From sequence record MG655267.1: 64,000 bases of DNA. One strand, given 5' to 3'. This document shows positions 16,154-61,040 of this stretch, in pieces (the stretch's first letter is position 1; each line of letters begins with the position of its first letter). The position numbers and the translations under genes were made by a program. The notes beneath the pieces were generated by a model. The model made no database searches and was not told the DNA's origin. It worked only from the letters and a program-made list of their open reading frames with translations.

Positions 16154-16181
16154 AAGAGGGGGCTTCGGCCTCCTCTTATGC
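16154..16181 (+). terminator. Hairpin terminator with TTATGC tail
   Basis: AAGAGGGGGC-TTCG-GCCTCCTCTT, overlapping TTATGC(CG) at 16176-16181, directly after the protease stop codon. Confidence 0.8.
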
Positions 16182-16246
16182 CGTCTGTAAAATTTAACGG
16201 GGATTGCCCTTAGTATGTACAAAAACCCAACAGGTAGGAAACCGTC

Positions 16247-16750
16247 ATGATTGACCTTCCCCACGTGCTGGCAAAGTCGATCTTTGCTATGCATGATCTG
16301 GCGCGCTTCGTTGAACGCTATCAGAGAGCCCACAGCGCCATTGTAACGACGTATAGCAATGCAGCCATGGCTTTGGATGTCTCTGAGAAGAAAAGCCGTG
16401 ACAACGTGTTAGCGGCGCTTTTAAAGGATATCAACATTATCCTTATTGGCAACCCCGATACACAACCCTGGCCGTTGGTCGATATGAACCCGTATCACAT
16501 CGGTCTGGCGTTCCGTCATGAGATGTTGAACCTCATGATGCAGGATGACATCGGCATGGAGCAGCTTAACCTGTTCATTAACAAAGTGTACTTCCCTGCG
16601 TTGGTGTTAAAAGACCTGCAGACCATTTTGTTAACGCAAGGTAAATGCCCGCTGTATGACAAAGCGGTGGTGGATGCGATGGCCGGCTTAGCGCACCAAG
16701 CGGCGTGCTTGCGAACCAACAACGCATTAGAGGTACCGAAAGATGCCTGA
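16247..16750 (+). CDS. Hypothetical protein (167 aa)
   Basis: ORF with a TAGGAA RBS. Confidence 0.7.
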   Translation: MIDLPHVLAKSIFAMHDLARFVERYQRAHSAIVTTYSNAAMALDVSEKKSRDNVLAALLKDINIILIGNPDTQPWPLVDMNPYHIGLAFRHEMLNLMMQDDIGMEQLNLFINKVYFPALVLKDLQTILLTQGKCPLYDKAVVDAMAGLAHQAACLRTNNALEVPKDA

Positions 16751-16916
16751 GCAGGATTTAGCTTTACTGGTGAAAATGATCGCTGCAGGATACCAGAGAC
16801 AGATTGAGGCAGAACGCTTCAATGGCATGAGTCCGAAAACCCTGCACTTAAAAGCACTGCGTCAAGCTGCCGATGAGATGATCAACCCCGGGGTGATGGA
16901 TTCAAAAAAATCATAG
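16743..16916 (+). CDS. Small hypothetical protein (57 aa, MPEQDLALLVKMIAAGYQRQ...), not in the ORF track
   Basis: GAGGT RBS upstream; overlaps the upstream stop codon; fills the gap before the next promoter. Confidence 0.65.
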   Translation: MPEQDLALLVKMIAAGYQRQIEAERFNGMSPKTLHLKALRQAADEMINPGVMDSKKS

Positions 16917-16919
16917 CCC

Positions 16920-16927
16920 TATATTAC
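16920..16927 (+). promoter_or_regulatory. Early (vRNAP-type) promoter box TATATTAC
   Basis: Exact match to the phiKZ early promoter consensus, with an A-tract upstream (16904-16910), ahead of the 17003 gene. Confidence 0.7.
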
Positions 16928-17002
16928 CCATGTGCTTTATACACTAAGTGTAAACACTATCGATAGCCATACACAAATTAACCCGTAAAAGGAAACTGTC
17001 AC

Positions 17003-17449
17003 ATGAGCAAGACCACTACTGAAGTCAACGCAGCTACCCGTACTCTGGCCGACTCACTGAAAGCAGCAATGACCGGCGGCGAGAAAGGTAACTATGCAAC
17101 GACTGAAACCTGGTATGCAGAAAACCTGCCAGAAGGTCTGACCATCGAACAGCGTCAGAAATTCCAGGAGCATGACACCACTGTGCTGGCAGCCGCCGCA
17201 TTGGCACTCGGTGAAGTGAGCGTTCCTGCAATGAAAGAAAACGGTGACATCACCGAAGCGACTGTTGCAGTTAATGTCGGTCATGACCGTATCACCGCAT
17301 CGGTGCTGCGCGATTACACCAACGGCAAAGAACAGTATCACGGTCACGTGATTGCGGCGTATGAAGTTAACAGCGCCGGCGCGAACAGTGGCCAGCTGGG
17401 TATTGCACTGAGCACCGTGCGTTCTCTGGCCGACGAACTGCTGGGTTAA
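17003..17449 (+). CDS. Hypothetical early protein (148 aa)
   Basis: AAGGAA RBS; codon usage typical of highly expressed genes; downstream of a TATATTAC box. Confidence 0.8.
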   Translation: MSKTTTEVNAATRTLADSLKAAMTGGEKGNYATTETWYAENLPEGLTIEQRQKFQEHDTTVLAAAALALGEVSVPAMKENGDITEATVAVNVGHDRITASVLRDYTNGKEQYHGHVIAAYEVNSAGANSGQLGIALSTVRSLADELLG

Positions 17450-17701
17450 TCACTAACCCAAACTGTAACCATGGGAAGCCTAGACACCTTCCCATGTTAA
17501 ACATCCCTGGCTGCAATACTGCAGTCATTCACTTATAAGTGCGAAGTCAACTCAAGCACCCATAAGCGAACCGAAGCATTCGAAAAATAGACAAAGTAAT
17601 CAAAGGTATGGTCCGGAAACCGTGCCTTTCTTTACTGTGTTTAATCCCAAATACAGTACGCCCTGCATTCAGAAAGAATGCCAATTGAAAAGGACAGTAC
17701 C

Positions 17702-18886
17702 ATGAAAATTGAATACACCATCGACCCAATCGCTTCGCCGATTAACGAACAACGTATCCTGGCGAATCGTTTCACTATCGACACCCCTGATCTCAGCATC
17801 ACCGGATTCATCTCATCACTCGATGTGCTGATCAAACCGACCGGTCCTGATGCGCGCCCACATGGCACCTACGACCGTCATCTCGCCTACGAGATTTCTG
17901 TTGTAATGAAAGATCTTGAGAAACGCTATCCGGCACGTCCAGATGGTTCATTTCGCTTGAACGTAAGTGTGGGTGACTTCCCAGAGAAAGAAGCGGATGG
18001 TTATACTCGCCGCTGGTTGCCTATCATCGGCTTGGAAGCTGAATCAGAAATCGACGCAATGCGTTTAGTTATCCGCGCACTCTTCGGTGAATTATTGCGC
18101 CCCCACGACTACTCACATACAGTGGTCAATAAAAAATACCTGCATGTCTGTGAGCAACTCATGGATCTGGGTTTGGTAAACATCCCTAACGGCGATTATA
18201 AAAGCCCACTGGTGATGACGCGTGTTCATGATGGTGAGGTCAGTGTTGATCGTGCATGGCGTGTGGTAAATAACAAGCTGGCGTTAAAGCGCACCATACT
18301 GACACGTCAGATTGATGCTAACACTCGCCAGACCCGGATGTTTACCCCAGCTGAACATCAGTTCTTTGAACTGGATGGAAGCTTGCCGTTTAATCCAACG
18401 CAGAATCGCGGTCATGGGTTCTTTCAACCGTGCCACAATTCAGGGTTGAGTCAGGACTCCTGGATGCGTCAACAAGCTGCTATGCAGATGAACGCCATGG
18501 GATCGGTTGCTCAATACGGATTGAATGCCATGAATTATCAGCAACCGTCAATGCAACACGGAGTACCAGCACATCACAATCGTTCGTTGGTTGAAAGTGA
18601 TCTGGGTCCACGTAACGAAGATACACCGATCCGTGGTAAGGTGAAGTATATCGAAGTAGCTCCTGTTTTGATTACTGAAGATAGCGCATCAATTGTCAAC
18701 GATGGCAGCCATAACGCATATGGCGTGTATCGTCGTGAAGAACTCGGTGGCGGTAACCTTGCCGTGCATATCGGTGACTTCCTGGACGGTGGGCTCGCTG
18801 TAGCGTACGCAACCAAAATGGGTAAGTTCTTCAATGTTGATGTCGAAGACTATGTTAGTCCTGCGCCTGCAGAATATAACAAGTAA
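17702..18886 (+). CDS. Hypothetical protein (~394 aa) with a Q/M/N-rich internal segment
   Basis: Long ORF; AAGGAC RBS favours the ATG at 17702. Confidence 0.75.
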   Translation: MKIEYTIDPIASPINEQRILANRFTIDTPDLSITGFISSLDVLIKPTGPDARPHGTYDRHLAYEISVVMKDLEKRYPARPDGSFRLNVSVGDFPEKEADGYTRRWLPIIGLEAESEIDAMRLVIRALFGELLRPHDYSHTVVNKKYLHVCEQLMDLGLVNIPNGDYKSPLVMTRVHDGEVSVDRAWRVVNNKLALKRTILTRQIDANTRQTRMFTPAEHQFFELDGSLPFNPTQNRGHGFFQPCHNSGLSQDSWMRQQAAMQMNAMGSVAQYGLNAMNYQQPSMQHGVPAHHNRSLVESDLGPRNEDTPIRGKVKYIEVAPVLITEDSASIVNDGSHNAYGVYRREELGGGNLAVHIGDFLDGGLAVAYATKMGKFFNVDVEDYVSPAPAEYNK

Positions 18887-18911
18887 TTAGTTTCCTGATA
18901 ACAATAATAAC

Positions 18912-19050
18912 GGCCCGGGGTAACACTTGGGCCGAGCTGTCTTTTTCCGCCATGGGGGGTTTCTGTTCCCCCTCTTTTTTTTATCCTAATTCACAAAGAG
19001 GTAGCCGGCAATGACCGGTTGCCCTTTCATACCACTCTTTTTTTTTTATT
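18912..19050 (+). terminator. Cluster of hairpins with T-tracts
   Basis: GGCCCGG-GGTAACAC-TTGGGCC, a GGGGG/CCCCC stem followed by a T-run, and GTAGCCGG-CAATGA-CCGGTTGC followed by a long T-run. Confidence 0.6.
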
Positions 19051-19085
19051 AAGATTACACACAGCATCCTCAATAGGTGACCATC

Positions 19086-19481
19086 ATGAATGTTTGGACT
19101 ATCCAGATCGCTCGATGGAAACTGGCTAAAGAGCGTAACATTGCTTTTCTTGATACCACTGTTAAATCTGCAAAAGAGTATGCCTTTCTGGCCCCGACCT
19201 GGAAGATGGTCATGGAGCATAAACAAGGCAGTCTCTCTGATACAGGTTACACGCAACTTTACTATGAGTTGTTACGTGCTCGCTATCGTGAGAACCGACA
19301 ACCTTTTTTAAAGCTGTTTCATGACTTTGCTGACCAGGATATTGCCGTGGCGTGCTTTTGCACTCCCGGTCATTTTTGTCACCGTCATTTGCTTGTAGAT
19401 ATTCTACGCGCTATAGCCGTTAGTGAACATATACCGTTTTGCTACAAAGGTGAACTTACTTTAGGAGAACACGTCACATGA
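19086..19481 (+). CDS. DUF488-like protein
   Basis: C-terminal 'IAVACFCTPGHFCHRHLL' motif (C.C...CHR) plus 'FLAPTWKM', as I recall for the DUF488/YeaO-like family. AGGTGA RBS favours the ATG at 19086. Confidence 0.6.
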   Translation: MNVWTIQIARWKLAKERNIAFLDTTVKSAKEYAFLAPTWKMVMEHKQGSLSDTGYTQLYYELLRARYRENRQPFLKLFHDFADQDIAVACFCTPGHFCHRHLLVDILRAIAVSEHIPFCYKGELTLGEHVT

Positions 19482-19864
19482 GCGACATCAATCAGGCGTA
19501 CACACGACTACAGGGATCAACGGACTTACCCACGGGTGAATTGATTAACCCACCGAAAGGGTGCCCGGGGATTACCGCACAGGTCGTCTTACGTCTGTTT
19601 CACAAAGTCAACGGATTGATCATTTACACGGAAGAGGTTCCAATCACTGTATTGAACATGCGGTGTTGTGAGATCTCAATGTACATGTTTATGAACCCGG
19701 TACTGGAGCATACTGCCGCTCCGTTAACACCCAGTCTTTATATGGTTGGTAATAACGTGTTCTTAGACGTGGAAGTGCAGCTTGATCGTATGGCCCTTTC
19801 CTCCGGGGATGTCGGTCGTTATTGTCAGGCGATGTTTTACCAGCAGTCCCTCAAGAGTAACTGA
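19478..19864 (+). CDS. Hypothetical protein (128 aa)
   Basis: AGGAGA RBS; ATGA overlap with the upstream gene. Confidence 0.7.
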   Translation: MSDINQAYTRLQGSTDLPTGELINPPKGCPGITAQVVLRLFHKVNGLIIYTEEVPITVLNMRCCEISMYMFMNPVLEHTAAPLTPSLYMVGNNVFLDVEVQLDRMALSSGDVGRYCQAMFYQQSLKSN

Positions 19865-19883
19865 ATTCAAATAAATTCAGGAC

Positions 19884-19891
19884 TATATCAC
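19884..19891 (+). promoter_or_regulatory. Early promoter-like box TATATCAC
   Basis: One mismatch to TATATTAC, with an AT-rich upstream element. Confidence 0.5.
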
Positions 19892-19928
19892 TTACGTGAG
19901 TAATAATAAGATAAAAAGGTTTTGAGCT

Positions 19929-20369
19929 ATGAGTGTAGCAGGTTCTATCTTAGCCTGGATCAATAATCAAATTGATCGGTTTGCCGACAGTCAGGAAGCC
20001 CAAGTCTGGACCGCCATTATTGTGCTGTTCTTTCTGTGCTTGCTTGTTAGTGAATTGCGCACTGTGCGACAAACCGAAAAGTTTGAAAATGGCTTACGTT
20101 TATTAATTGGGAAATACAATCTTTATTCACCAGAGGATGTCGAATCACTTAATCAACGCGGTTATGATTTGTTTGAGCTGTATGTTGAAAGCTTGACAGA
20201 ATGTAACATCCCGGTCTATGACCGTGAGCGAGAAGAAGAGGAGTTTATGAAAGGCTTCTTCCACGGTTATGTGATCGGAAGACGTGTTATGGCCAAAGTG
20301 CATCCTGACCCAAGAGTTGTGGAGTGCTTTGAGAAAAAGTTTTACAAGTATCTCGGCGATATTCGTTAA
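19929..20369 (+). CDS. Hypothetical membrane protein (146 aa)
   Basis: Hydrophobic helix VWTAIIVLFFLCLLV near the N-terminus. Confidence 0.7.
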   Translation: MSVAGSILAWINNQIDRFADSQEAQVWTAIIVLFFLCLLVSELRTVRQTEKFENGLRLLIGKYNLYSPEDVESLNQRGYDLFELYVESLTECNIPVYDREREEEEFMKGFFHGYVIGRRVMAKVHPDPRVVECFEKKFYKYLGDIR

Positions 20370-20373
20370 ACCG

Positions 20374-20432
20374 GCATAAAGGCTAGCATTCCCCAACGGG
20401 AATGCTAGCCTGCTTATGCTGCTTTTTTTTTT
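20374..20432. terminator. Bidirectional terminator between convergent genes
   Basis: GCATAA-AGGCTAGCATTCCC-CAAC-GGGAATGCTAGCCT-GC-TTATGC, then a T-run. Confidence 0.85.
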
Positions 20433-21306
20433 ATCGAGTCGGGGTGACTTGATTGTTACGGGCGTCTTCAACATCCTGCGCGTAACCGGCCTTGATAGCC
20501 TGGACGTCAGCAGTGATCTGCTTCATGCGATCTGGCAGGTCCTGCGTGTACGGGTTGGCATTCAGAGGCGCGGTGTCTTTCAGGATCTTCGCAGCCAAGT
20601 TGTCCACAGCAAGGTTCATGATGAACGTGCCGGTAAACTCGATGCTGTGTACCCAGTCCGCTGCGCCTTGTGATTTATCAAAGCGAGACTCACGGGTACC
20701 TGAAGATTTCGGACGCATGTTCACGCCGAGGTAGGCGTTGATCACTTCCAGGCCCGTTGGGTCAGATTCCACATACAGACAGATCATGGAGATCATGTCC
20801 GGCAGCAGATCTGTCGGTGGGTTTGGATAAGTCATGATCAGTGGACGCTTAACATCAGGGTCCATGATGAACAGACGAATCCACCACTCGAACAACGTAC
20901 CGTGCGGGAAGCCGTACTTTTCACCGATCTCATGTACTGGGACCGGCTGCTGTTGGGTGACGTTACCTGGGTCGTGCTGTTCAGCACCGGCACCGCCGGC
21001 AGGCTGAGTGAAGTCATCAACAGTCAGTGCACGCTGGAAGCCCGTAATGGTACGGGTGTGTTTTTCCATCACTGTCTTGATGTGACCGTGCCACAATTCA
21101 GGGTGATCCAGGTAACGAATAGCACCTGGCGTTTCGAGAACGAAACAGCGCAGTTGCTGCTGGCGGAAGCCGGCGTTATCAACGTAACGTGCGAGGTTGG
21201 CGTTGAAGCCAAAGTAACCGCCCGTGAGGGCGTTTACCATGGTTGCGTTCGTGAACGCTGCCGGACCGACGCCAGACTGGGCGACGCTATCAGTAAAACG
21301 TGGCAT
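20431..21306 (-). CDS. Tail tube protein (phiKZ gp30-like)
   Basis: 291 aa, immediately downstream of the sheath gene, the conserved myovirus sheath-tube arrangement. Confidence 0.8.
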   Translation of the reverse strand: MPRFTDSVAQSGVGPAAFTNATMVNALTGGYFGFNANLARYVDNAGFRQQQLRCFVLETPGAIRYLDHPELWHGHIKTVMEKHTRTITGFQRALTVDDFTQPAGGAGAEQHDPGNVTQQQPVPVHEIGEKYGFPHGTLFEWWIRLFIMDPDVKRPLIMTYPNPPTDLLPDMISMICLYVESDPTGLEVINAYLGVNMRPKSSGTRESRFDKSQGAADWVHSIEFTGTFIMNLAVDNLAAKILKDTAPLNANPYTQDLPDRMKQITADVQAIKAGYAQDVEDARNNQVTPTR

Positions 21307-21307
21307 A

Positions 21308-23395
21308 TTACACTAAGTCCTCTTGGTTACGTGAGACGACCGTGAAGCTGCCGATGTACATGCCTTTATTGAAGGCAGCACTTACCTCACAGGAGTAGCG
21401 AACACGGCTGTTCTGGTCAGCGATGGTCCGGAACGAGTTCACGCTAATAACTACGCGGTTGTCGTAACGGTCTTTCGTCAGGTTTTCCAGAATGCGGTTG
21501 AGTTCAGACAACGTCTGTGCGGTGGTGCGACGGGTATCGGTACCGAGCATGCGATAAGCGATCTGACACTGCTTCTCGATGTCCACACAAATGGTCAGCG
21601 CGATTTCATCACGCAGCACAGAGGATTCGGTATCGTACACGGTCTGCACATGCGGAACGTACGCCTGACGACGGTTGTACGTCTGTGCGTAGTTCAGACC
21701 CAGGCCCCACTCGGTATTGCGTACTTCGTTTGGTTCCCAAAGCGCGTCCATGTTTTTCATGAGCTGCACTTTGTTGTTTTCTGCTGCATCATACGCGAAC
21801 GCATTCTTCAGCACACCATCACCGCTACCCGCATACCGTGCACGCTTGTAGGCGTGGTCGAGCAGATGCGGATAGAAGTCATCGCTGTCTTCAGACGCCA
21901 GTTGACCTGACTGCATGAAGAACACCGCACGGCAGGTTGAGGTACCGTACAGAGATGACTCTGGGAACAGCATGGCGTAAGAACGCAACGATGCGGCCAT
22001 GGAACGTTGCTCCAGGCTTGACAGACGGCTACCGCCAGCGATGTAGGTACCCACGTAGACGGTGATGTCTTTGCGTTTACCCAACAGGCTGATCAGTGAC
22101 TTCTTGGTTTCCAGGCTATAGCCCGCATCCCAGTAAGCCGATACCGGATAACGTGCGTCATCCAGCATTTCAATCCCTTCCAGGTCGCCGTAGTTATCGA
22201 ACTGCTGTTTACACAGCGCGTCGTATACGGACGTTGGGGTGATCGCTTTGCCATTGGCATCAACACCAGACAGCTTACCGTCAGTGCCGCCTTCTGCGTA
22301 GTAGATCGCGGTGTCATTGAGGTTCACACCGCCATCTGCTGTACCTTGCAGACGGAACGCGTAGTACGGTTGCCCGTAGAAGTCTACGCCGCCAATCAGG
22401 TTGATCTGATGTGCTGCATTGGTGCCTTCAGCCAAACCGGGGTTCAGCGGTTGCTCCAGTGCATAGATCTGATTCAGAACCTGGTCGAGGTTGTCATGAT
22501 AGACAAACAGGTTGTCCATCGGACCTGGCATCGGGGTGGTGCCATCATCGCCGCTGTTTGCGTAATCTTTAATACGCAGCTGCAGACCGTACTTGGTGTC
22601 AGTTGAGGTATCAACCACATCGCGACGGAAAGCAAAGTTGATCGCAGAAGCACGATCCTGGGTCAGCTTCACCACGGCAGTAGACTGCGCGTTCGGACGC
22701 TCGTAGAAACGCAGGCGATAGAGCTGGCTCAGCTGGTCAACAGCAACATTGACATTCAGCGGATCAGAACTCTTCGCGCTAGGTGCCCACAGCGACACGC
22801 CGACGTTGTTACCGAAAGCCCCTGGTGATGGCACTTCCAGATCGAGGAGGGGATAGAAGTCAGACTGAGTACCGCTACCGGACATCAGCTGGCCTTTCTT
22901 CTTCTCACCGGCACCGATTGCTCGGGTTACATCACGGTTGATCACCAGACGACCCAACATGCCGTTGGTGGTGGTGTCAGCTTCGACGTAAGCGCCATTT
23001 TCATCTTTGACAGCATTGCCGTCTTCATCGCGCTCGTAATCTTTGATGACGTCTGCTACCAGCTCAATCCCCAGAGTAAACATAGCAGGCTTAACGGCAT
23101 CCGCTGGGACCACACGCTGAACGATCAGGGTGTTTGCTGCCTGTGCAAAGATGTTCGCAAAGGCAGAGCCCATGGTGAAGAACTTTGACAGGTGGTTAAA
23201 AGTTGCAGAACCATACAGGGTGGTCAGTAACGTCGGGTCGATTAACTGCGGGTCAAGCGAACCACGCTCTGCCAATAAGTAGACATGCGGAAGGTGCTGG
23301 GGATACACCTCGGGCACGGCTACCGGTGCCAGTACGGACTCGTCCCGAATACCATTCAGGATGAACCGCGGTGCACCGTTGGAGATATTTGACAT
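21308..23395 (-). CDS. Contractile tail sheath protein (phiKZ gp29-like)
   Basis: About 695 aa; N-terminus MSNISNGAPRFILNGIRDES...PQHLPHVYLLAERG; 'RYPVSAYWDAGYSLETK' segment. GAAGGAGA RBS supports the ATG at 23395. Confidence 0.88.
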   Translation of the reverse strand: MSNISNGAPRFILNGIRDESVLAPVAVPEVYPQHLPHVYLLAERGSLDPQLIDPTLLTTLYGSATFNHLSKFFTMGSAFANIFAQAANTLIVQRVVPADAVKPAMFTLGIELVADVIKDYERDEDGNAVKDENGAYVEADTTTNGMLGRLVINRDVTRAIGAGEKKKGQLMSGSGTQSDFYPLLDLEVPSPGAFGNNVGVSLWAPSAKSSDPLNVNVAVDQLSQLYRLRFYERPNAQSTAVVKLTQDRASAINFAFRRDVVDTSTDTKYGLQLRIKDYANSGDDGTTPMPGPMDNLFVYHDNLDQVLNQIYALEQPLNPGLAEGTNAAHQINLIGGVDFYGQPYYAFRLQGTADGGVNLNDTAIYYAEGGTDGKLSGVDANGKAITPTSVYDALCKQQFDNYGDLEGIEMLDDARYPVSAYWDAGYSLETKKSLISLLGKRKDITVYVGTYIAGGSRLSSLEQRSMAASLRSYAMLFPESSLYGTSTCRAVFFMQSGQLASEDSDDFYPHLLDHAYKRARYAGSGDGVLKNAFAYDAAENNKVQLMKNMDALWEPNEVRNTEWGLGLNYAQTYNRRQAYVPHVQTVYDTESSVLRDEIALTICVDIEKQCQIAYRMLGTDTRRTTAQTLSELNRILENLTKDRYDNRVVISVNSFRTIADQNSRVRYSCEVSAAFNKGMYIGSFTVVSRNQEDLV

Positions 23396-23597
23396 TTCTG
23401 TCTCCTTCACTATCGATAGTTGTTTGTTTGTCACTTGGGTGAAACTTAAGCTTGCCTTAATTAAGGGCTACCACATACGTCCTGATTACCCGGGAGTAGA
23501 AAGTAAATGGTATGGTTCACTATTAGCTTTAACCCTAGCAGTGCCATAGAATAAAGTGTTATTCTTAACATATTTGCCTATAGAGGGTTTTCTCCTT

Positions 23598-28845: not shown

Positions 28846-28856
28846 CTGTAACACAT

Positions 28857-28899
28857 CAGGCCGGTGGGGGTAACCTCACTGGTCTGGTTTCACTTATGC
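28857..28899 (+). terminator. Hairpin plus TTATGC before terminase
   Basis: CAGGCCGGTGGGG-GTAA-CCTCACTGGTCTG, then TTATGC at 28894-28899. Confidence 0.65.
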
Positions 28900-28911
28900 G
28901 GAATGCTAACG

Positions 28912-31484: not shown

Positions 31485-31498
31485 CCTGAACTTGATCA

Positions 31499-31535
31499 GC
31501 ATAAGGAGAGGGCAAACGCCCTCTCCTCTATGCCG
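31499..31535. terminator. Bidirectional terminator
   Basis: GCATA-AGGAGAGGGC-AAAC-GCCCTCTCCT-CTATGCCG between convergent genes. Confidence 0.85.
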
Positions 31536-37110: not shown

Positions 37111-37152
37111 AGGCAGGAGGGGGCAACCTCTCCTGCTCTTTATGCTTTTTTA
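37111..37152 (+). terminator. Hairpin plus TTATGC and T-run
   Basis: GCAGGAGGGG-GCAA-CCTCTCCTGC, then TTATGC at 37140-37145 and TTTTTT. Confidence 0.8.
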
Positions 37153-37405: not shown

Positions 37406-37619
37406 CATTAACCTGTAATCGGATAAAAAAAAAACCGCGAAATTGAAACCGGGAGGCTGAAGCCTCCCTTTATGCTTGTTTAGTTTATCTTAGTAATTCA
37501 TGACTAGAGTGGCTAACAGTATGAAAGTATTTAAATCTTTCACCCGAGCTAAGGGTAACGTAGAGGTTTAGATATATGCTGATTAAATTTTAATTAAGAT
37601 TAAGAGAAGGATCGTTATC

Positions 37620-38455: not shown

Positions 38456-38563
38456 TCGTCGTATATCTTATGAAATAGACTCCTTCGCCCGCCTCCTTCT
38501 TCCTGAGGGTCGTGGGTTGAAGGGTCTATGCCGATCGATATGTAATCTAATAAATTTTGTATC

Positions 38564-39609: not shown

Positions 39610-39882
39610 ATGAAACTAACTTTATGCCAGGCCAACGGGTATTCATTGATTCACCCGGCGTACCACAGTCACACCCCGAAGAACAACGTCGTGTTGGCGG
39701 AGGGGAAGTTATCCTTTAAAGACAACCGCTGTTTCCTCGGTACCAAAGAGATCGGCCATGTGCTGGCGAACGGTAACGTACAGCTGAACACCGATGTGGT
39801 GCTGCCTACCCTCGGCTTTGTCACCGGGTTGCGTAACCAGATCCGCTTCCTGCACAAAACCATTGCCCGTCAGCTTCATTAA
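39610..39882 (+). CDS. Hypothetical protein (90 aa)
   Basis: AGGAG RBS before the ATG at 39610; the ORF-track start (39508) overlaps the upstream gene. Confidence 0.7.
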   Translation: MKLTLCQANGYSLIHPAYHSHTPKNNVVLAEGKLSFKDNRCFLGTKEIGHVLANGNVQLNTDVVLPTLGFVTGLRNQIRFLHKTIARQLH

Positions 39883-39889
39883 GGTCACA

Positions 39890-39940
39890 GGGGGTAGTCC
39901 AACTACCCCCTCGCCTTTATGCTCTCTTTTTTTTTTGTAT
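39890..39940 (+). terminator. Hairpin plus TTATGC and T-run
   Basis: GGGGGTAGT-CCA-ACTACCCCC, then TTATGC at 39917-39922 and a long T-run. Confidence 0.75.
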
Positions 39941-42115: not shown

Positions 42116-42468
42116 CAGGTATTTGTAAATAAATACTAGATATCTGCTATTACTATGTAAACTACGACGCTCCGAAAATCCCCCAAGATAAAGGAGTCAT
42201 AACCTCTCCGTTATGCGCCTCGTAGTTTTCTTTTGAGACAGGCAAGGACGTCGACTGGGTTCAGCTGATACTGTAAAGTGTTGCTGTGTGTGCCCGGTCC
42301 CTTGCCGTCTCCTTTTTCTCGATTTGTGCGATTCTCTTCCAGGCTGTTCTTACCTGATCTCGTGTCAGGAAACAGATCGAAGACAGACATGCGAATCAAC
42401 TTTGGTAGTGCCTACTATATACACACTTAGCTGTAAATTTTACTCAAAAGCAATATTAAGGATGACCC

Positions 42469-44270: not shown

Positions 44271-44336
44271 TCTGTAGGTCGCAGGTTCGATTCCTGTCGG
44301 GGTGAAACCCGTAGCTCAGTCGGTTAGAGCAGCAGA
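44271..44336 (+). ncRNA. Circularly permuted tRNA-like domain (T-arm, closed acceptor, D-arm)
   Basis: TCTGT-AGGTC-GCAGG-TTCGATT-CCTGT-CGGG-GTGAAA-CCCG-TA-GCTC-AGTCGGTTA-GAGC-A-GCAGA. Confidence 0.85.
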
Positions 44337-44409
44337 ACAACTGCTTATGCTAAAAGCAATGATCTTTGGGATCATCAATGGTGTACTGTGAGCACCTTGA
44401 AATCACAGG

Positions 44410-45580: not shown

Positions 45581-45984
45581 CCCTTGCGTTCCTGGAGGGA
45601 TGACACCGCGTTAAGACTGATCCCCTTAACGAAGTTGCAATAGCCGGGGGTGATTCTTGCAAAGGTTACTCACAGCAGACTGCCTCCGCCAATTGCGGAT
45701 GGCTTAGGCCCTCAGTCCGTCAGGAAGTTGTCGTTGAATAAGTGACAGCTGGACTAGGGTTGCATTATAACCCGGCAAGTGTGCAGCCTGTTTTTTCTTC
45801 ATGTGTACCTGAACCGGTTCAGGAGCCTACAGATGAGGGAACGACGGGAAGCATATTGCTACCGATCATTTGCTGTGTGACCGGGCCAAGGATGGCATAT
45901 ACCGGAACCAGTAACCGTATTCAGCGCAGGTGCGCTTTCTCTTCCTTATCTTGTGGTTAAACCGCGCCTGTCTGGATCATATGT

Positions 45985-46012
45985 GCCGGGGTCACACCTG
46001 GCGCTTATGCCG
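45985..46012 (+). terminator. Hairpin plus TTATGCCG closing the RNA island
   Basis: GCCGGG-GTCACA-CCTGGC, then TTATGC at 46005-46010. Confidence 0.6.
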
Positions 46013-46037
46013 TCTGAGTTGTATCCTTTTTTACTCC

Positions 46038-47659: not shown

Positions 47660-48215
47660 CTTCGCCCATCCTGTTAACGCGGTTAATACGCAGCAACAGT
47701 TCGAGCTGTTTACGATCACTACCCTGCAGTTGCATGGCGGGAGTGTTTTCCATCGGGTGACATTGCCTTTGGATGGACACCCTACCGAGATCGCATTGTT
47801 TGCCCAGCCCACGAAGATGTCACATGTCGATGTGTTGCGCACGGTGCACGATCTGGTGTTTCTGTGGATTCCGCCGGTGACTGATCCGCGGGGGTTAATC
47901 ATGGGTCATCGTGATTATATCCTCAATCTCTGTAAAGAGACCTTGCGGGTTGTTGCAGGTGTGGGTAGCTGGCCAGTCCCGGCGTTTAACAAACAGGATG
48001 TCACGGATAACGGCGTGCTTCATTTGTTGCGCTACTATGATCCGATAATGGATCGTATCATCACTCAGGTGGTTGGTACGCCGCCAATGGATCTGGATGA
48101 TCGGGATATGCGCCAGGATAAGCAAGGGGCAGGGCTTGTCGCCTTCTCACCCTCGTGGCTTGACCCAGGGCCTTTCACGGCACAGGATCACAACTACGGC
48201 GTTGCGGATGCATAA
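47643..48215 (+). CDS. Hypothetical protein (~190 aa)
   Basis: In-frame GTG at 47643 after a G-rich RBS; this start avoids a long overlap with the upstream gene. Confidence 0.65.
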   Translation: MVQLSNFAHPVNAVNTQQQFELFTITTLQLHGGSVFHRVTLPLDGHPTEIALFAQPTKMSHVDVLRTVHDLVFLWIPPVTDPRGLIMGHRDYILNLCKETLRVVAGVGSWPVPAFNKQDVTDNGVLHLLRYYDPIMDRIITQVVGTPPMDLDDRDMRQDKQGAGLVAFSPSWLDPGPFTAQDHNYGVADA

Positions 48216-48219
48216 AACG

Positions 48220-48272
48220 GCATAAGAGGAGGGGCAAATGCCCCTCCTCTGTTTATGCTCTTTTTTTTTTGT
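48220..48272. terminator. Bidirectional terminator
   Basis: GCATAA-GAGGAGGGGCA-AA-TGCCCCTCCTC-TGT-TTATGC, then a T-run, between convergent genes. Confidence 0.85.
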
Positions 48273-50333: not shown

Positions 50334-50366
50334 CCCCTCCACCGTTTTGGTGGAGGGGTTATGCCG
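50334..50366 (+). terminator. Hairpin plus TTATGCCG
   Basis: CCCCTCCACC-GTTTT-GGTGGAGGGG immediately followed by TTATGCCG. Confidence 0.8.
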
Positions 50367-50384
50367 TCAAAAATAATTCAAACC

Positions 50385-52486: not shown

Positions 52487-52489
52487 CCT

Positions 52490-54439: not shown

Positions 54440-54458
54440 CAGCAAAGAAGGTTTGCAC

Positions 54459-54761: not shown

Positions 54762-54778
54762 CACTTGGGAGTGTGCAC

Positions 54779-55198
54779 GTGTCAAAAAGCTATGCAGATC
54801 TCGTCAAGGGCGCGATCGTCGACTTTAATGTGGTGGCGCCAGATATCCTGGGCGAAGGGTTTACCTCATGTACGGTCAATGGTCGCTTTGATGCCGATAC
54901 CGCTAACCTGCTTGGGTTGGATGTCCAGGCGAAACACCAGAACCTGTACCCGCTGGTGAAACCCCAAGGCATCCCGGATAATCCTGATAGCTACGACTTT
55001 ATCAAGGTAACCAAAACCAGTGGCGCGCAAGCGATCCTGTGGCTACCCTGGATTGTCGAATCGACGATCGCCCCGGTCTCTCGTAACAAGATCAATGTGG
55101 TGATTGAAGACGTGGGATCAAAAGACATCGCTGTGGTTAAAGCCGCACTGGAGTCTAACGGTTATCTGAATGCAGTGGTTACCCTGATTGACAATTAA
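54779..55198 (+). CDS. Conserved small beta-rich (SH3-like) chimallivirus core protein (phiKZ gp49-like)
   Basis: Immediately upstream of the DNA polymerase gene, as in the conserved core block; GGAG RBS; family assignment is by recalled synteny. Confidence 0.55.
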   Translation: MSKSYADLVKGAIVDFNVVAPDILGEGFTSCTVNGRFDADTANLLGLDVQAKHQNLYPLVKPQGIPDNPDSYDFIKVTKTSGAQAILWLPWIVESTIAPVSRNKINVVIEDVGSKDIAVVKAALESNGYLNAVVTLIDN

Positions 55199-55206
55199 TA
55201 ATAAAC

Positions 55207-55252
55207 GCCTGTGGGTTTCCACAGGCTTTATGACCCACTTCTTTTTTTTTTG
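55207..55252 (+). terminator. Hairpin terminator
   Basis: GCCTGTGG-GTTT-CCACAGGC, then TTATGA and a long T-run. Confidence 0.7.
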
Positions 55253-55323
55253 TTATCAACTATTTCCTTACATGGATCGTCTAATCATTTAGAGAGTTAA
55301 GCCAGCGCTAAGGATATCCTGCC

Positions 55324-57435
55324 ATGGATTTATTCATTAACCACCCGAGTGAGTATAAACGCGATTACCGTATTTATCATCACTACGTTGAAGGAAAGGC
55401 ACTTGCCATTTCCAAGATCACCGGCCGTCCGCTTGATGAAGCACGTGAGTACGTTACCCGTGTTACCGGCGAGACCGGGAAGTTTGCGTTACAAGATCCG
55501 CGGGTTAAAATCCTGGTGCGGAACAAAGTGGGCGACCGTGAACTAAAGTACACCACCTTTAATAAGTTTCTGAAGGCCGTAGAAGACCGTGGTGCGATTT
55601 TATCACCGAGCCTGACTGCTTACCTACATCCGAAAGAGAAGGTCTCACAATACGCTGTATCGACTGATAAGAACATCAAAGCGCGTAAAGTGATTAAGCA
55701 TGAGATGTTCATCGCCGAACAACGCGGTGACATGGTGACCAAGAACGTAAAAGAGATCATGCAGACTGGGCGTAAGCTCACCAACAACGGAATGTCCGGC
55801 GGGTTTTGTACCGCATCGACTCCGTTCTTCTGCCGATCAGCCCACAGCTCACTGACCTCCTGCTGTCGTAGTGCTACCAGTTCCACCAATGCCTTCAACG
55901 AGAAGTTCTTGGCCGGTAACCGACACTACTACAGTCCCGAGATTACCATTGAGTCGATTACTACGCTGATCCGCTTCAGCGACCTGGAGAAAATCCAGGC
56001 GGTCATGACCGAGTTTAATCTGCAAGCACCAACCGTCACACAGACCATGGCCTGTATCTATCGCAGTACCCGGCGCTATTGGTCTGACAAGTACTTCATG
56101 GGGGTGATCTTAAAACTCATTGAAGGGTTGACGGATGTTGAGCGTGCGGCGTTCATGTTTGTCTCCGATCTCTATCACCTGCGTGAAGTCAACCCGGACT
56201 TTGTGCGCAAGTTCTTAATCGATCTGGCAGAGCGCAGTGAAGACCAGTTGGCTGACGATGTGAAGATGAAGGATGGGGATTGCCGTATCCTGGCGACCAT
56301 GAAGTGTGCGGACGATATCGCGCGTATCGGGACAAAGAACCTGGAGCACAGCGAAGAGTTCAAAGCACGCCTGAAAGCGAACTATGTATTGAGTGAACGC
56401 AACATCACGCAATATGAATCGTTCATCCGCGCCTTCTTTGTTACCAAGAACACCCCGACCAGCATTGCCATGATGCCGCACCATGTGCGTGAAGTGGTAT
56501 TGGCATCCGATACCGACTCCTCAATCTTTACCGAGCAGATCTGGATTGACTGGATTCAGCCAGACTACTCCAAACGCCAAGAACGTATCCAGGTAAACGC
56601 CGCAGTAACTTTCCTGATCTCGCAGCAGGTCGTGCATTTACTGGCAATCGTTTCCGGTAACATCGGGGTAGCGGACGAACATCTGTTCCGTCTGGCAATG
56701 AAGAACGAATACTACTTCGAAACGTTTGTGTTGACCAACATGGGTAAACACTACTTTGCGACCCAGGCTGCCCGTGAAGGGAACTTCTTCCCGAAACCCA
56801 AGCTTGAGCTCAAGGGTGTGCACTTACGCAACTCTAACGTACCGAAAGAGATTCGAGACCGCGGTAACAAACTGATCAACGACATCCTGGATAAGTCCAA
56901 CGTCAATGAGCAGTTCTCGGTGGTAGATCTGTTAAACCAGGTTGGGGATATAGAGCGCTTCATCATCAACTCCATTACCAAAGGCGAAACGATCTTCTTA
57001 ACCAAAGCCACGATCAAGGATAAGGGGTCTTACGCTAAACCGTACAGCTCAAACTACTACCACTACTGTATGTGGCAGGAAGTCTTTGCTGAGAAATATG
57101 GTCAAGCACCGCCATTGCAATACATTGGTCTGAAAGCGAAGTTGGGCCTGAGCTCACAAACCGCCGTGAATGACTGGCTGGATAGCTTAGAAGATCAAGC
57201 CCTGGCTGAGCGGATGCGTAAGTTCTTAGTGAAGTACGGCAAGAAGTCGATCACCCAGGTGGTCATGCCGGCGGATATCGTGATGAACATGGGCGTACCA
57301 CCTGAGATCATTGCCGGTATCGATCTGCGTAACCTGATCATGGAGAACCTGTCCATGGTGTATTCGTGTCTTGAATCGCTAGGCCTTTATTACGTAAACG
57401 ACAACGCAACCAAACTGGTATCTGACGAACATTAA
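55324..57435 (+). CDS. Split family-B DNA polymerase, palm/fingers-containing subunit (phiKZ gp50-like)
   Basis: Motif B-like KLTNNGMSG, motif C ASDTDS, and KHYF / ELKGVHLRNS. No exonuclease motifs or motif A seen, consistent with the two-gene polymerase of phiKZ-like phages. Confidence 0.88.
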   Translation: MDLFINHPSEYKRDYRIYHHYVEGKALAISKITGRPLDEAREYVTRVTGETGKFALQDPRVKILVRNKVGDRELKYTTFNKFLKAVEDRGAILSPSLTAYLHPKEKVSQYAVSTDKNIKARKVIKHEMFIAEQRGDMVTKNVKEIMQTGRKLTNNGMSGGFCTASTPFFCRSAHSSLTSCCRSATSSTNAFNEKFLAGNRHYYSPEITIESITTLIRFSDLEKIQAVMTEFNLQAPTVTQTMACIYRSTRRYWSDKYFMGVILKLIEGLTDVERAAFMFVSDLYHLREVNPDFVRKFLIDLAERSEDQLADDVKMKDGDCRILATMKCADDIARIGTKNLEHSEEFKARLKANYVLSERNITQYESFIRAFFVTKNTPTSIAMMPHHVREVVLASDTDSSIFTEQIWIDWIQPDYSKRQERIQVNAAVTFLISQQVVHLLAIVSGNIGVADEHLFRLAMKNEYYFETFVLTNMGKHYFATQAAREGNFFPKPKLELKGVHLRNSNVPKEIRDRGNKLINDILDKSNVNEQFSVVDLLNQVGDIERFIINSITKGETIFLTKATIKDKGSYAKPYSSNYYHYCMWQEVFAEKYGQAPPLQYIGLKAKLGLSSQTAVNDWLDSLEDQALAERMRKFLVKYGKKSITQVVMPADIVMNMGVPPEIIAGIDLRNLIMENLSMVYSCLESLGLYYVNDNATKLVSDEH

Positions 57436-57444
57436 TCTCCGTCG

Positions 57445-57500
57445 GCATAAAGGCCTCTTAGCGGGATAATCCCCGCTAAGAGCGCCCTTTTATTTATGTG
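57445..57500. terminator. Bidirectional terminator
   Basis: GCATAA, then CTCTTAGCGGG-ATAATC-CCCGCTAAGAG, then TTATGT, between convergent genes. Confidence 0.8.
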
Positions 57501-58606
57501 TCTTTGCCGGTGATCATATTCTGGATATGGGTCAGTTCGTAATCGATGGTGTTCTTGACCTTGCTGGTTAAGCCGCTCAGGTAGAAGGTGTTGTCTGACC
57601 GAATGCGTTGAATCGCATGCAGGATGGTGTTGAAGTTTGCCCCCTCTTTTCGCCGTTTAAACGACACCTCCAGTTCCACCAGGAAATCGATCACCCAGGT
57701 ACGGGCTATGATCCACGCCCAACGGTTCTGTCGCATTTCCATGTCAATCGGTAACCGGATCGCATCATGGCCGTTTCGCCAGACAGTGGGGATATGCAGT
57801 AACACCGCTTCAAAGAACCGCTGACTGCGTTGGAGCTCCACCACAGTTCTAACAATCACCTGATCGGTGATAGCCAGTTCATCGTTGAGCCAGAAGCTTT
57901 GCCGGACATTACGGGTTTCCCGTAAGTCATTCTCATAGCGACCGATAAAACGATTGAAGATGGCGATGTCATTGTGGGACTTGAGCAGATTGGGGATCGG
58001 GTACTTGGTGACGAACAGATAGGGCGCGGGTGCTGTTGCGCCCTCTTTGGTTTGCTCACGCAACCACATCAAGTACTGCAGTGCTAATAAAGGAATGTTG
58101 ATACTGAGCACCGCGATCCCTGAGCCGCCTAAGTCATGCTTCTTACAGAGCAAGCCGTAGTAGGTGACATTATAAGGGTGGCGATGGACTTTGATCGGTT
58201 CCGCATCTCGCCAGTTATACAGCATCTCCGGTTTAAACGGTTCAGAGTTGGTGATGATGATCTCATCTACCGAGTCGTCGTAGAACTGAGAGCGCACGAT
58301 CGCGCCGAAGCGGGTGGCACTGGTTAAGTTGAATTTATTACCGTAGCGGTAATCCACGGCCCGTAAGTCATCGTAGTACTTTCGTACATTATCGAGAGAT
58401 AATTGTGTAAGACTGCCGCCTGGTAGTGGTAACTCCTTTATGAGCTTCACCACCAGATGGTTATTCAATATGGAATTCTCGTTTGACCGCCAATGGTTAA
58501 GCGCACGTTCCATATTGCGATGGGAAATATCGACAAGTCTTTTGTGCAGCGGCGTCAACATGCTACCGTAATTGGTAGTGACGTCAGAGGCAAATAGGTT
58601 AAGCAT
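57494..58606 (-). CDS. Conserved core protein between DNA polymerase and chimallin (phiKZ gp52-like)
   Basis: 370 aa, minus strand, in the conserved polymerase-X-chimallin arrangement; AGAGG RBS. Confidence 0.65.
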   Translation of the reverse strand: MLNLFASDVTTNYGSMLTPLHKRLVDISHRNMERALNHWRSNENSILNNHLVVKLIKELPLPGGSLTQLSLDNVRKYYDDLRAVDYRYGNKFNLTSATRFGAIVRSQFYDDSVDEIIITNSEPFKPEMLYNWRDAEPIKVHRHPYNVTYYGLLCKKHDLGGSGIAVLSINIPLLALQYLMWLREQTKEGATAPAPYLFVTKYPIPNLLKSHNDIAIFNRFIGRYENDLRETRNVRQSFWLNDELAITDQVIVRTVVELQRSQRFFEAVLLHIPTVWRNGHDAIRLPIDMEMRQNRWAWIIARTWVIDFLVELEVSFKRRKEGANFNTILHAIQRIRSDNTFYLSGLTSKVKNTIDYELTHIQNMITGKDT

Positions 58607-58650
58607 ACGACCTCTATTGACTATATGTAAAAGTGTACATGGCTCGAGTA

Positions 58651-58759
58651 TATATTATGTAAGAGGTCACACTCTTGACTCCCTGTTCACGCAGGGGGTC
58701 GAACTGAGGGTAATGCTGCCTCAAAAGGTGAATTCAAAAAAATTACAAGTCTATATTAC
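58651..58759 (+). promoter_or_regulatory. Tandem early promoter boxes upstream of chmA
   Basis: TATATTAT at 58651-58 and TATATTAC at 58752-59, each with an A-rich upstream tract. Confidence 0.65.
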
Positions 58760-58828
58760 GTATGTGTATAGAGTAATCTATGCAACATTAGCTAATGTAA
58801 ACTTGCAAGTAAATTAAAAGGAATCGGT

Positions 58829-60964
58829 ATGAAAACTCCTGAAGGCGAAAACAAGGCACAGGGTCAGCAGCCATCTGACCAGCAGCAGCCTAACAATTCG
58901 GCAATGGGTGATGCGCTACTGCAAGCGCAACAGAGGCAGAGTCAGCAGCCACAGCAGCAGCAAACTCCGCCTCAACAAGCGCCGCAGTCAGCACCTCAAC
59001 CAGTGCAAGCAGCAACCCAGCAACAGCAACACACCCCACAATTTCATCAGACTGCAGGTAACAGCACCGTGAACAACACAACTAACAACACCAACACCGA
59101 ACAGCAGCAGCCGCGTCAGTCACGCATTTACGGCATGAACGAACGCCGTTCTCGTATCTTCGACGCGACCGCGTTTGGTGAAAACTTTAAGATCGCGCTG
59201 GAAGCGACCAAAGAAGTGCTGGAAGGCTATGAAGATAAAGGTTTCAACAAATCTTTCTTCCTGGTTCCCGTTGCTGATGCAACCCTGCACTGCAATGGTC
59301 TGGCGTATGCGTCTGTGTTCAACTTCGGCGGTAGCACCAAAGCGATCGTCTATACCCTGATGCTGGAAAACACCGGTTCTCCACTGAAGCCACAGCGCGG
59401 TAACGATCCACTGACGGGCGAACCGTTTGAGATCCCACGCATGACCGGTTCTCAGTACGACAACACCTACTGGGCTCGTGTAGCACAGCTAGTCGCACAC
59501 CGTGTTGGTAACAACGCAGAAGTGCTGGATGCTGGCGCCTGTGTGGTGCACGCTGAGATGAAGTGGGACGACAAGTCTGCGATCAAACAGCTGCTGAACA
59601 ACGCAGAAAACGCCACCATGGCGTATGCGAACAGCCTGTCTGGTTACCGTATCGAACCACCATTCAACATCGCGCAGGAAGTGGACCCGAACATCGACCG
59701 CATCACCGCGGGCTTTAACTTCAATCCACAGCCGCTGTTCACTGTTGATGGTCAGCCGATCCGTAACGACGTCGAAGTGAAACTGTCTGCTTACGCAGAA
59801 GGCGCAGGTCAGGTTCAGACCACCGAAGCCATCACCACCGTGAACGGCTATGTTGAGCTGATCGCTGCACCGCAGCAGCAGATGGGTTATCAGCAGCAGA
59901 TGATGATGGGTATGAACCCGCAGCAGGCGATGCAGTTCTACCGTCGCTTCTACCCGCAGTTCACCATCACTTCAACTGGTACCGGTATCTCTAACGCACA
60001 GGGTCCTGAGTTCCAGCTGCTGGCGCTGTTCGCTGCTTCACTGATTGGTGAAAACAGCAACTGGCACCATGCGTTTGCGCCGAAGATGGTAAACGGTGTC
60101 GATATCAACGATATCGGTGCGATCAACTACGAACTGAAAATGGGTCTGGAAAGCCCAGATGACCGTCCGAAGAAGATCATCACCAAAGACCACAGCTTCA
60201 CCACGCAGGCTCTGCATCAGCTGCTGTACACCGCATGCCACGAATCCATGTCAATCGCGATCGACATCGAAGAGACCGGCACGCGTACCTGGGTTAACTC
60301 CATGCTGCTTCTGGCTGGCGGTCAACCAAACGGTAATGCTGCAGCACTGAGCCCACAGGGTCAGCAGGCGCACAAAGCGATCATCCAGGCGGCGAACAAC
60401 CTGACCAACGGTGAGTTCAGCAAACACTTCACCGATCAGAACCAGCTGATTGCTGTACGTGACGGTACCCGTATTCAGGGTGGTTTCTACGTCTCTAAAG
60501 ACAACCATCAGAAAATGGATATCCGTAACGTCGACCTGCTGGCGGTTCTGAACTTCGTCGGTGAAACTGATCCGCGCATCGTGGAAGAGTGGAAAATCAT
60601 CACCAGCTCTACTTCTGGTATGTCTACTCCGAAACGTGTCGCGCTGCGTCAGCAGAAACTGCAGCAGCTGCTGGGTGAGTCTTTCGTCCTGAAAGCTTAC
60701 TACGAGCGTGTAGTGATTAACTGGGCATTCATGGATGCTCTGCGTAAAGCAATCACTGCAGCAGGCCTGATCGTGCGTCCGGAAAACACCAACATGCAGT
60801 ACAACGTACAGAGCTACGGCACGCCAATGGCGCAGCTGTACGGCATGCCTACCAACATCGGCAGCTCACTGCAGCAGGGTGCTTACGCAACCGACAACCA
60901 AGGTCGCGTAGTGAACATGGCAGCGTTCCGTACTGGTGGTGCATTCGGTACGTTCAACGGCTAA
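58829..60964 (+). CDS. chmA: Chimallin (phage nuclear shell protein)
   Basis: 711 aa, strongly biased codons, directly upstream of the nvRNAP beta' gene and downstream of the polymerase/gp52-like genes (the conserved chimallin locus), in a genome with phuZ. Assigned mainly by synteny and size. Confidence 0.85.
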   Translation: MKTPEGENKAQGQQPSDQQQPNNSAMGDALLQAQQRQSQQPQQQQTPPQQAPQSAPQPVQAATQQQQHTPQFHQTAGNSTVNNTTNNTNTEQQQPRQSRIYGMNERRSRIFDATAFGENFKIALEATKEVLEGYEDKGFNKSFFLVPVADATLHCNGLAYASVFNFGGSTKAIVYTLMLENTGSPLKPQRGNDPLTGEPFEIPRMTGSQYDNTYWARVAQLVAHRVGNNAEVLDAGACVVHAEMKWDDKSAIKQLLNNAENATMAYANSLSGYRIEPPFNIAQEVDPNIDRITAGFNFNPQPLFTVDGQPIRNDVEVKLSAYAEGAGQVQTTEAITTVNGYVELIAAPQQQMGYQQQMMMGMNPQQAMQFYRRFYPQFTITSTGTGISNAQGPEFQLLALFAASLIGENSNWHHAFAPKMVNGVDINDIGAINYELKMGLESPDDRPKKIITKDHSFTTQALHQLLYTACHESMSIAIDIEETGTRTWVNSMLLLAGGQPNGNAAALSPQGQQAHKAIIQAANNLTNGEFSKHFTDQNQLIAVRDGTRIQGGFYVSKDNHQKMDIRNVDLLAVLNFVGETDPRIVEEWKIITSSTSGMSTPKRVALRQQKLQQLLGESFVLKAYYERVVINWAFMDALRKAITAAGLIVRPENTNMQYNVQSYGTPMAQLYGMPTNIGSSLQQGAYATDNQGRVVNMAAFRTGGAFGTFNG

Positions 60965-60996
60965 TCCGGCGTTGTAAGCAAGCAGTAACATGAACG

Positions 60997-61040
60997 GGTA
61001 GGCGGGAAACCGCCTACCTTGTTTATGCCCACTTTATTTT
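60997..61040 (+). terminator. Hairpin plus TTATGC
   Basis: GGTAGGCGG-GAAA-CCGCCTACC, then TTATGC at 61023-28. Confidence 0.8.

Follow-up and report, generated by a model that had tools for sequence, protein, structure and literature searches.

Hairpin-TTATGC elements in the Bosolaphorus window

The DNA analyzed here (the window) is a stretch of 64,000 nucleotides that is identical in sequence to bases 124001–188000, plus strand, of Erwinia phage vB_EamM_Bosolaphorus (MG655267.1). This phage belongs to the species Agricanvirus ray and is a phiKZ-like jumbo phage with a genome of 272 kb, in which several genes are annotated for β/β′ fragments of two multisubunit RNA polymerases, the virion (vRNAP) and non-virion (nvRNAP) enzymes. 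Its gp2 is the orthologue of phiKZ GP123 (26% identity, E = 3e-50), and homologues of gp225 were found across phiKZ-like phages. A preliminary description of the window had noticed the hexamer TTATGC just 3′ of intergenic hairpins, and had read it as a directional terminator signal of the phage polymerases or, alternatively, as a late promoter re-initiating transcription after each terminator. The consensus of this putative terminator element is a GC-rich hairpin, a gap of 0–2 nt and the sequence TTATGCCG.

Every site listed in that description was read individually, and the 40 nt upstream of its motif were folded. On the plus strand, the first candidate terminator follows gp172 (16156..16184) and lies 6 nt past the stop codon at 16149, with a hairpin at 16156–16175 closed by a UUCG loop, TTATGCCGT at 16176–16184 and a folding energy of −15.4 kcal/mol. 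After gp184 (28855..28901), the hairpin at 28855–28888 (−26.1 kcal/mol) is separated by a 5-nt gap from TTATGCGG at 28894–28901. The gene for the terminase large subunit starts 18 nt after this last element, which leaves no room for another promoter, and the same layout is kept in the related phage AH06; this gene must be expressed by read-through or by initiation at TATG. The element after gp192 (37112..37145) consists of a hairpin at 37112–37137 and TTATGC at 37140–37145, followed by a T-rich stretch (−21.5 kcal/mol), and a further intergenic element was found at 37451..37475, with its hairpin at 37451–37468 and TTATGC at 37470–37475 (−14.6 kcal/mol). A long imperfect hairpin (38481–38524) and the variant CTATGCCG (38526–38533) make up the putative terminator after gp194 (38481..38533), and a promoter-like box, CTATATTAC, follows at 38563. 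The one after gp197 (39882..39936) has a hairpin at 39882–39916 with a core stem at 39889–39911, TTATGC at 39917–39922 and a run of ten T (T10) at 39927–39936 (−21.2 kcal/mol).

Two plus-strand elements ending in TTATGCCGT are also accompanied by promoter-like boxes. The first (45983..46013; −15.5 kcal/mol) has its hairpin at 45983–46004 and its motif at 46005–46013, with the box CTACATTAC 32 nt downstream (46037), and the second (50334..50367; −21.4 kcal/mol), located 147 nt past the tubulin-like gene gp212, has its hairpin at 50334–50358 and its motif at 50359–50367, with the box CTACATTA 25 nt downstream (50384). The candidate terminator after gp221 (55207..55251; −15.8 kcal/mol) carries a hairpin at 55207–55226, the variant TTATGACC at 55228 and a T10 at 55242–55251. 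The last one follows gp224 (60996..61030; −20.4 kcal/mol), its hairpin at 60996–61019 having a GAAA loop and being followed, after a 3-nt gap, by TTATGCCC at 61023–61030.

The window has four convergent junctions, where the preliminary description had seen the reverse complement GCATAA before the hairpin (20374, 31499, 48220, and 57445). These four copies proved to be true minus-strand hairpins followed by TTATGC, with folding energies between −18.4 and −28.4 kcal/mol. Between gp179 (+) and gp180 (−), a putative bidirectional terminator (20372..20432) has a single hairpin at 20380–20411 (−26.9 and −28.4 kcal/mol on the two strands), TTATGC at 20414–20419 and a T10 at 20423–20432 on the plus strand, and TTATGCCG at 20379–20372 on the minus strand. 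The one between gp186 (+) and gp187 (−) (31497..31535; −20.1 and −18.4 kcal/mol) shares the hairpin at 31504–31527 between the plus-strand variant CTATGCCG (31528–31535) and the minus-strand TTATGCTG (31504–31497). A third, between gp210 (+) and gp211 (−) (48218..48270; −24.2 and −21.7 kcal/mol), has its hairpin at 48225–48250, TTATGC at 48253–48258 with a T10 at 48261–48270 on the plus strand, and TTATGCCG at 48225–48218 on the minus strand, where an extra TTATGC at 48215–48210 overlaps the gp210 stop codon. At window positions 48212–48258, contigs from the sequencing run of a relative branch exactly at the hairpin into sequences matching other copies of the putative terminator; the near-identical AGAGGAGG...CCTCCTCT copies thus behave as short dispersed repeats for assemblers. 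At the fourth junction, the candidate terminator of the minus-strand gene gp223 (57443..57487; −27.5 kcal/mol) consists of a hairpin at 57487–57451 and TTATGCCG at 57450–57443, and its plus-strand side offers only TTTTATTTATGT, a doubtful match.

Ten of the 12 exact plus-strand copies originally reported to adjoin a hairpin were confirmed (16176, 20414, 28894, 37140, 37470, 39917, 46005, 48253, 50359, and 61023); in all of them a compact hairpin ends 0–5 nt before TTATGC, and the upstream fold ranges from −14.6 to −26.9 kcal/mol. The other two copies were discarded as members. At 42211 the stem has only 4 bp (−4.4 kcal/mol), and the copy at 44345 (−7.7 kcal/mol) lies directly 3′ of a tRNA-like or YrlA-like RNA at 44273–44336 (+) and belongs to that region. 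This RNA matched the Rfam family YrlA (Y RNA-like) with 44.5 bits and E = 8e-8, short of the family's gathering score (69), and no tRNA was called there by ARAGORN. Among the reported variants, those at 31528, 38526, and 55228 (TTATGA) stood, and the one at 57494 (TTATGT) is doubtful, being 7 nt from the stem and overlapping the stop codon of the minus-strand gene.

Elsewhere in the genome, two GenBank genes, gp51 (start 46564) and gp57 (start 50045), have as their start codon the ATG contained in a TTATGC of the element (genome positions 46562 and 50043), directly 3′ of the hairpin. A start better suited to gp57, equipped with a GGAGG ribosome-binding site, is located 18 nt further on. Both start codons are probably mis-annotated.

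Association with hairpins, anatomy and gene junctions

As a bare word, TTATGC was not enriched in the window (36 copies vs. 28.6 expected), and neither TATGCCG nor YTTATKYYGT was over-represented alone; only the link to hairpins was significant. A strongly folding segment of 40 nt preceded 15 of these 36 copies, against a background of 3.2% (binomial p ~1e-13). Genome-wide tests were carried out on the complete, joined Bosolaphorus record, taking as a strong fold a folding energy of the 40 nt upstream of the motif within the bottom 2%. Such a fold was present upstream of 63 of the 146 TTATGC copies and downstream of none (0/146), while permuted control hexamers had it upstream in a median of 3% of cases; the signal is thus real and lies at gene ends over the whole genome. 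The 63 hairpin-linked copies constitute the element set used below.

The association was also recovered without anchoring on the motif. When the 10 nt located 3′ of perfect GC-rich hairpins were analyzed (178 flanks), TATG was the top-enriched 4-mer (62/178 flanks vs. 3.1 expected), followed by TTAT, ATGC, TGCC, and GCCG. In this hairpin-anchored count, TAT was followed by G in 61 of the 86 flanks bearing it, and C came next in 59. A classifier based on minimum free energy, which took the best hairpin 3′ of every stop codon, was dropped since the motif was absorbed into long stems.

The 40 nt upstream of the motif fold at −13.7 kcal/mol or lower at the 63 sites (−14.6 to −28.4 kcal/mol at those of the window). 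Stem and TTATGC adjoin without a gap in 33 sites and are separated by 1 nt in 13 and by 2 nt in 11, so that 57 of the 63 fall within 0–2 nt. The base 3′ of TTATGC is C or T in 60/63 and is then followed by G in 46/63, and the final T of the KYYGT tail is weak (22/63); the complete YTTATKYYGT pattern is present without mismatch at three sites of the window. The statement that many loops are GNRA was exaggerated, since only 13/63 are of this type, with UNCG in 6/63, though tetraloops in general account for 44/63. By contrast, the observation that several sites have no adjacent U-tract was borne out, no T-run of at least 5 being found within 24 nt after the motif in 48 of the 63 sites. The motif starts 25–66 nt past the same-strand stop codon of the upstream gene in 53 of 62 sites.

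Long T-runs (8–11 T) are strand-biased in this genome, with 19 on the plus strand vs. 3 on the minus strand, and all 19 plus-strand runs fall within ~25 nt 3′ of a hairpin. Most of them do not adjoin the stem but begin 9–16 nt past it, with the motif or a C/T-rich filler in between. Eight are located at convergent junctions, only on the plus-strand side, and those of the window are the four T10 tracts given above (20423–20432, 39927–39936, 48261–48270, and 55242–55251). One of the two polymerases might use these runs as an additional stop signal, or they might form a U-rich leader.

The orientation of the hairpin-linked copies followed that of the genes. At co-directional junctions, 19 copies were sense, with 10 more hidden by over-long open reading frame calls, vs. 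2 antisense. Convergent junctions carried 9 copies on the plus strand and 14 on the minus strand. The exact arrangement GCATAA-hairpin-TTATGC, with the motif on both sides, was present at 9 of the 18 annotated convergent junctions; at 8 others the motif was confined to one side, opposite a variant with one changed base, a T-run or nothing at all, and the element was missing at the one convergent junction without a spacer. It was found at none of the 18 annotated divergent junctions of the genome. Within the window, GCATAA does not accompany the motif upstream at co-directional junctions, as had been reported, but this rule does not extend to the whole genome, where three co-directional junctions have GCATAA upstream too, or instead (genome positions 11331, 57916, and 271307). 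The proposal that the motif is a directional element and not a stem extension was sustained, as at 33 co-directional sites its pairing with the upstream flank is no stronger than its pairing with random 12-mers. A hairpin followed by CTATGCTG and T9 was also observed on the plus strand at genome positions 120327–120372, between the minus-strand virion genes gp162 and gp163 and antisense to both; its function may be to halt antisense transcription or to terminate a plus-strand RNA that is not annotated.

The element was then compared with the sequences of other phages. AH06 is ~80% identical to Bosolaphorus in the compared region, and at orthologous junctions TTATGC and GCATAA were kept while the stems had changed with compensation, most clearly at window positions 20380 and 28855. 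The AH06 orthologue of the 20380 site has a different, compensated stem between two unchanged motifs. The site at 48218..48270 is conserved with changes in stem and loop, that at 50334..50367 is conserved, and that at 55207..55251 is identical. At 37140, AH06 retained the hairpin and has a T-rich tract in place of the motif, a replacement which suggests that the TTATGC tail and a T-rich tract may be interchangeable, or functionally equivalent. The same signature was detected in 50 kb scanned of phiKZ, with TATG in 21 of 56 hairpin flanks vs. 1.8 expected; in this sample, the base at the G position was G in 20 and T in 9 of 41 cases. Single examples were also found in Xanthomonas phage RTH11 (TTTTTATGCCGTC), Goslar and EL, and the samples of SPN3US and RSL2 had ordinary T-tracts.

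Terminator, promoter, and processing as explanations

Signals of this kind have been mapped in two Pseudomonas phages. In phiKZ, 133 termination regions were located from the 3′ read ends of cappable sequencing on the Oxford Nanopore Technologies (ONT) platform (ONT-cappable-seq; Putzeys et al., 2024; PMC10914365), and 61 of them contain the motif BCCYCCCCHWWDGGGRRGGBYTTATKYYGT, a stem-loop plus TTAT; six terminators are bidirectional and located between convergent genes (PMC10914365). The "motif A" of 201phi2-1 (n = 59) strongly resembles the phiKZ motif according to its authors, some copies being extended in the stem by a second motif, and eight selected terminators of this phage worked in a terminator trap in vivo, where they stopped a downstream reporter in uninfected Pseudomonas (PMC11512511). 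Erwinia phages are mentioned in neither study (PMC10914365; PMC11512511). The signal described here belongs to a kind already known from phiKZ and 201phi2-1.

The Bosolaphorus element fits the phiKZ consensus base for base through TTAT-G-C-C-G. In both, TTAT, G or T, two pyrimidines and G come immediately 3′ of a GC-rich stem-loop, whose loop is usually a tetraloop; both are found 3′ of genes, bidirectionally between convergent ones, in phages with two multisubunit RNA polymerases. They differ in that the fifth base is almost always G in Bosolaphorus, the tail is sharper (GCCG) with a weak final T, and the 5′ arm at co-directional sites is usually purine-rich (AGGAGAGG), whereas that of phiKZ is CCYCCCC. 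The genomes also differ in GC content (50% vs. 38%), and it was mapped 3′ ends that yielded the phiKZ motif, whereas the Agricanvirus element is known here from its sequence. The stem-lengthening second motif of 201phi2-1 is, by its description rather than base by base, much like the GCATAA/TTATGC palindromes at the convergent junctions of Bosolaphorus. A canonical intrinsic terminator likewise begins just past the gene with a stable GC-rich hairpin, whose stem directly adjoins an A/U-rich segment on its 3′ side, but instead of an uninterrupted U-tract the Bosolaphorus element has only UUAU and then GCCG, 48/63 sites being free of T-runs, and its T9–T11 runs, where present, usually lie 9–16 nt past the stem and do not adjoin it.

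The sense position past stop codons, the pattern at gene junctions, the compensatory stems of AH06 and the match to the phiKZ and 201phi2-1 motifs all favor the terminator proposed in the preliminary description, a reading supported by homology to the mapped motifs. We consider it likely that the hairpin-TTATGCCG elements serve the multisubunit RNA polymerases of the phage itself as terminators, in an Agricanvirus form of a conserved phiKZ-type terminator.

The motif includes TATG, which is also the late promoter of phiKZ, where G is +1 and substitution of any of the four bases sharply lowers activity (PMC4666361). The non-template strand of these promoters is bound in a pocket of the β-like subunit GP123, and the phiKZ-type non-virion polymerase differs from the bacterial enzyme, being reported to lack homologues of α and ω (PMC12809450). 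In Bosolaphorus, the 100-nt stretches preceding genes at divergent junctions contain 26 copies of TATG (vs. 8.1 expected), and the phage therefore probably has TATG promoters as well. It is extremely improbable, though, that the hairpin alone terminates and that TTATGC is an independent promoter placed behind it by chance, in spite of the core shared with phiKZ late promoters. The motif stands at a fixed distance of 0–2 nt from the stem, is found on both strands at convergent junctions and at none of the 18 divergent ones, and AH06 exchanges one copy for a T-rich tract; in addition, at the 48 sites lacking a U-tract a hairpin by itself would make an incomplete terminator, and the phiKZ motif came from mapped 3′ ends (PMC10914365). 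A late promoter would be expected before late genes, free of hairpins and followed by permissive sequence. That of phiKZ needs no hairpin and is followed by easily melted sequence, P119L reading TATGTAGAC without a hairpin, whereas the TATG of the Bosolaphorus element has a hairpin before it and CCG after it, and also occurs where there is no gene downstream.

A dual element is the version of the promoter reading with more in its favor: a terminator whose TATG would double as a late-promoter core, so that nvRNAP starts or restarts at G and a short leader carries the ribosome-binding site of the next gene. If the transcript were released after UUAU, the G would indeed be in the +1 register of the phiKZ late promoter. 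Besides the promoter data already given, at 10 of the 32 co-directional sites the start codon of the next gene follows after only 16–30 nt, which include a Shine-Dalgarno-like sequence, and the terminase gene starts 18 nt after the motif at 28894 in an arrangement kept in AH06. Read-through accounts equally well for such closely spaced genes, however, and the G and the CCG that follows it are kept as strictly as elsewhere at convergent junctions, where no gene lies downstream and initiation would yield only antisense RNA. The TATG copies before divergent genes are moreover of another type, followed by T or A in 20/26 and by C in 3/26, vs. C in 59/86 TAT-bearing hairpin flanks. The G position of the phiKZ terminator can be G or T (K), yet a substitution in TATG sharply cuts promoter activity (PMC4666361), and P119L has no hairpin. 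On balance we regard the dual element as unlikely, and the late promoter after each terminator, offered in the preliminary description as the alternative, is not supported as the main function in view of the convergent junctions and of the T or A that follows TATG at divergent ones.

The 3′ ends of the relatives might instead result from RNA processing or stability, by cleavage within a single-stranded UUAUGCCG or by exonucleases digesting the RNA as far as the hairpin, perhaps with a phage RNA-binding protein as guide. A single-stranded A/U-rich motif adjoining a stable hairpin is a common nuclease context, which counts in favor of this explanation, and sequencing of 3′ ends alone cannot separate termination from processing. 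However, the eight 201phi2-1 terminators stopped the reporter in uninfected Pseudomonas (PMC11512511), a result that termination fits better than a phage-specific processing factor, and no evidence for a dedicated nuclease was found. Processing is thus very unlikely.

Several points weigh against the elements being terminators. Searches of public sequencing runs gave no RNA library containing Bosolaphorus; two runs of unknown type and one metatranscriptome yielded low-depth, DNA-like contigs of relatives, with no transcript ends. The ONT 3′ ends at the hairpins could arise from exonuclease trimming, the pause-and-release mechanism outlined below is one that we infer, and the TATG within the motif, together with the co-directional sites close to the next start codon, makes a second role in initiation possible.

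A different box was found near some of the elements. The sequence (A/G)(A/C)CCTA(C/T)ATTA(C/T), abbreviated CCTAYATTAC, has 25 copies genome-wide, 24 of them on the plus strand and almost always in gaps, 30–80 nt before start codons. Within the window, its CTAYATTA core starts at 16919, 34423, 38563, 46037, 50384, and 58751. Of all copies, six sit 25–37 nt past a hairpin-TTATGCCG element. The box contains a sequence like TATATTAC, which we take to be the core of the phiKZ early promoters, and is probably the virion-polymerase (early) promoter of the genus.

Putative mechanism and relevance of the element

A mechanism for termination by phage polymerases at these elements can be proposed. The transcript would carry a GC-rich RNA hairpin, usually with a tetraloop, and then, within 0–2 nt, UUAUGCCG instead of a run of U. 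The nascent hairpin would form while the polymerase stands on the weak UUAU:AATA hybrid, with U as the 3′ end of the RNA and G as the next base, and the GC-rich GCCG ahead would slow forward movement, so that the hairpin could release the transcript ~4–9 nt past the stem. UUAU would thereby replace the stem-proximal part of the U-tract, and G(CCG) would serve as a pause element. Because many sites sit between genes only 16–30 nt apart, they probably attenuate transcription rather than stop it fully, setting the expression ratios of neighboring genes.

The pause could also involve the promoter pocket, although we hold this with little confidence and think it doubtful. The non-template TATG, in the −3 to +1 register, would be captured by the pocket of the β-like subunit (GP123 in phiKZ, gp2 here), and elongating nvRNAP would pause after UUAU. 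Capture right after the hairpin would replace the missing U-tract and might allow immediate re-initiation at G. If true, it would explain both the conservation of G at convergent junctions and the use of one 4-base word to mark starts and stops. When gp2 was compared with the seven named pocket residues of GP123 (PMC12809450), three were identical and one similar, a match too partial to conclude that gp2 reads TATG, and no paper proposing pocket capture for termination was found in the literature searched.

In terms of phage biology, these results extend an experimentally mapped jumbo-phage terminator from Pseudomonas phages (Phikzvirus and Serwervirus) to an enterobacterial genus, with which the single examples of RTH11 fit. 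Its spread suggests that this stop signal is old and specific to the polymerase. The element provides a simple rule for annotating where transcription units end in Agricanvirus genomes, points to start codons at the ATG within TTATGC that are likely wrong, and offers compact terminators for engineering Agricanvirus phages. Finally, the overlap of its TATG with the late promoter is a testable lead on how these polymerases may terminate without a U-tract.

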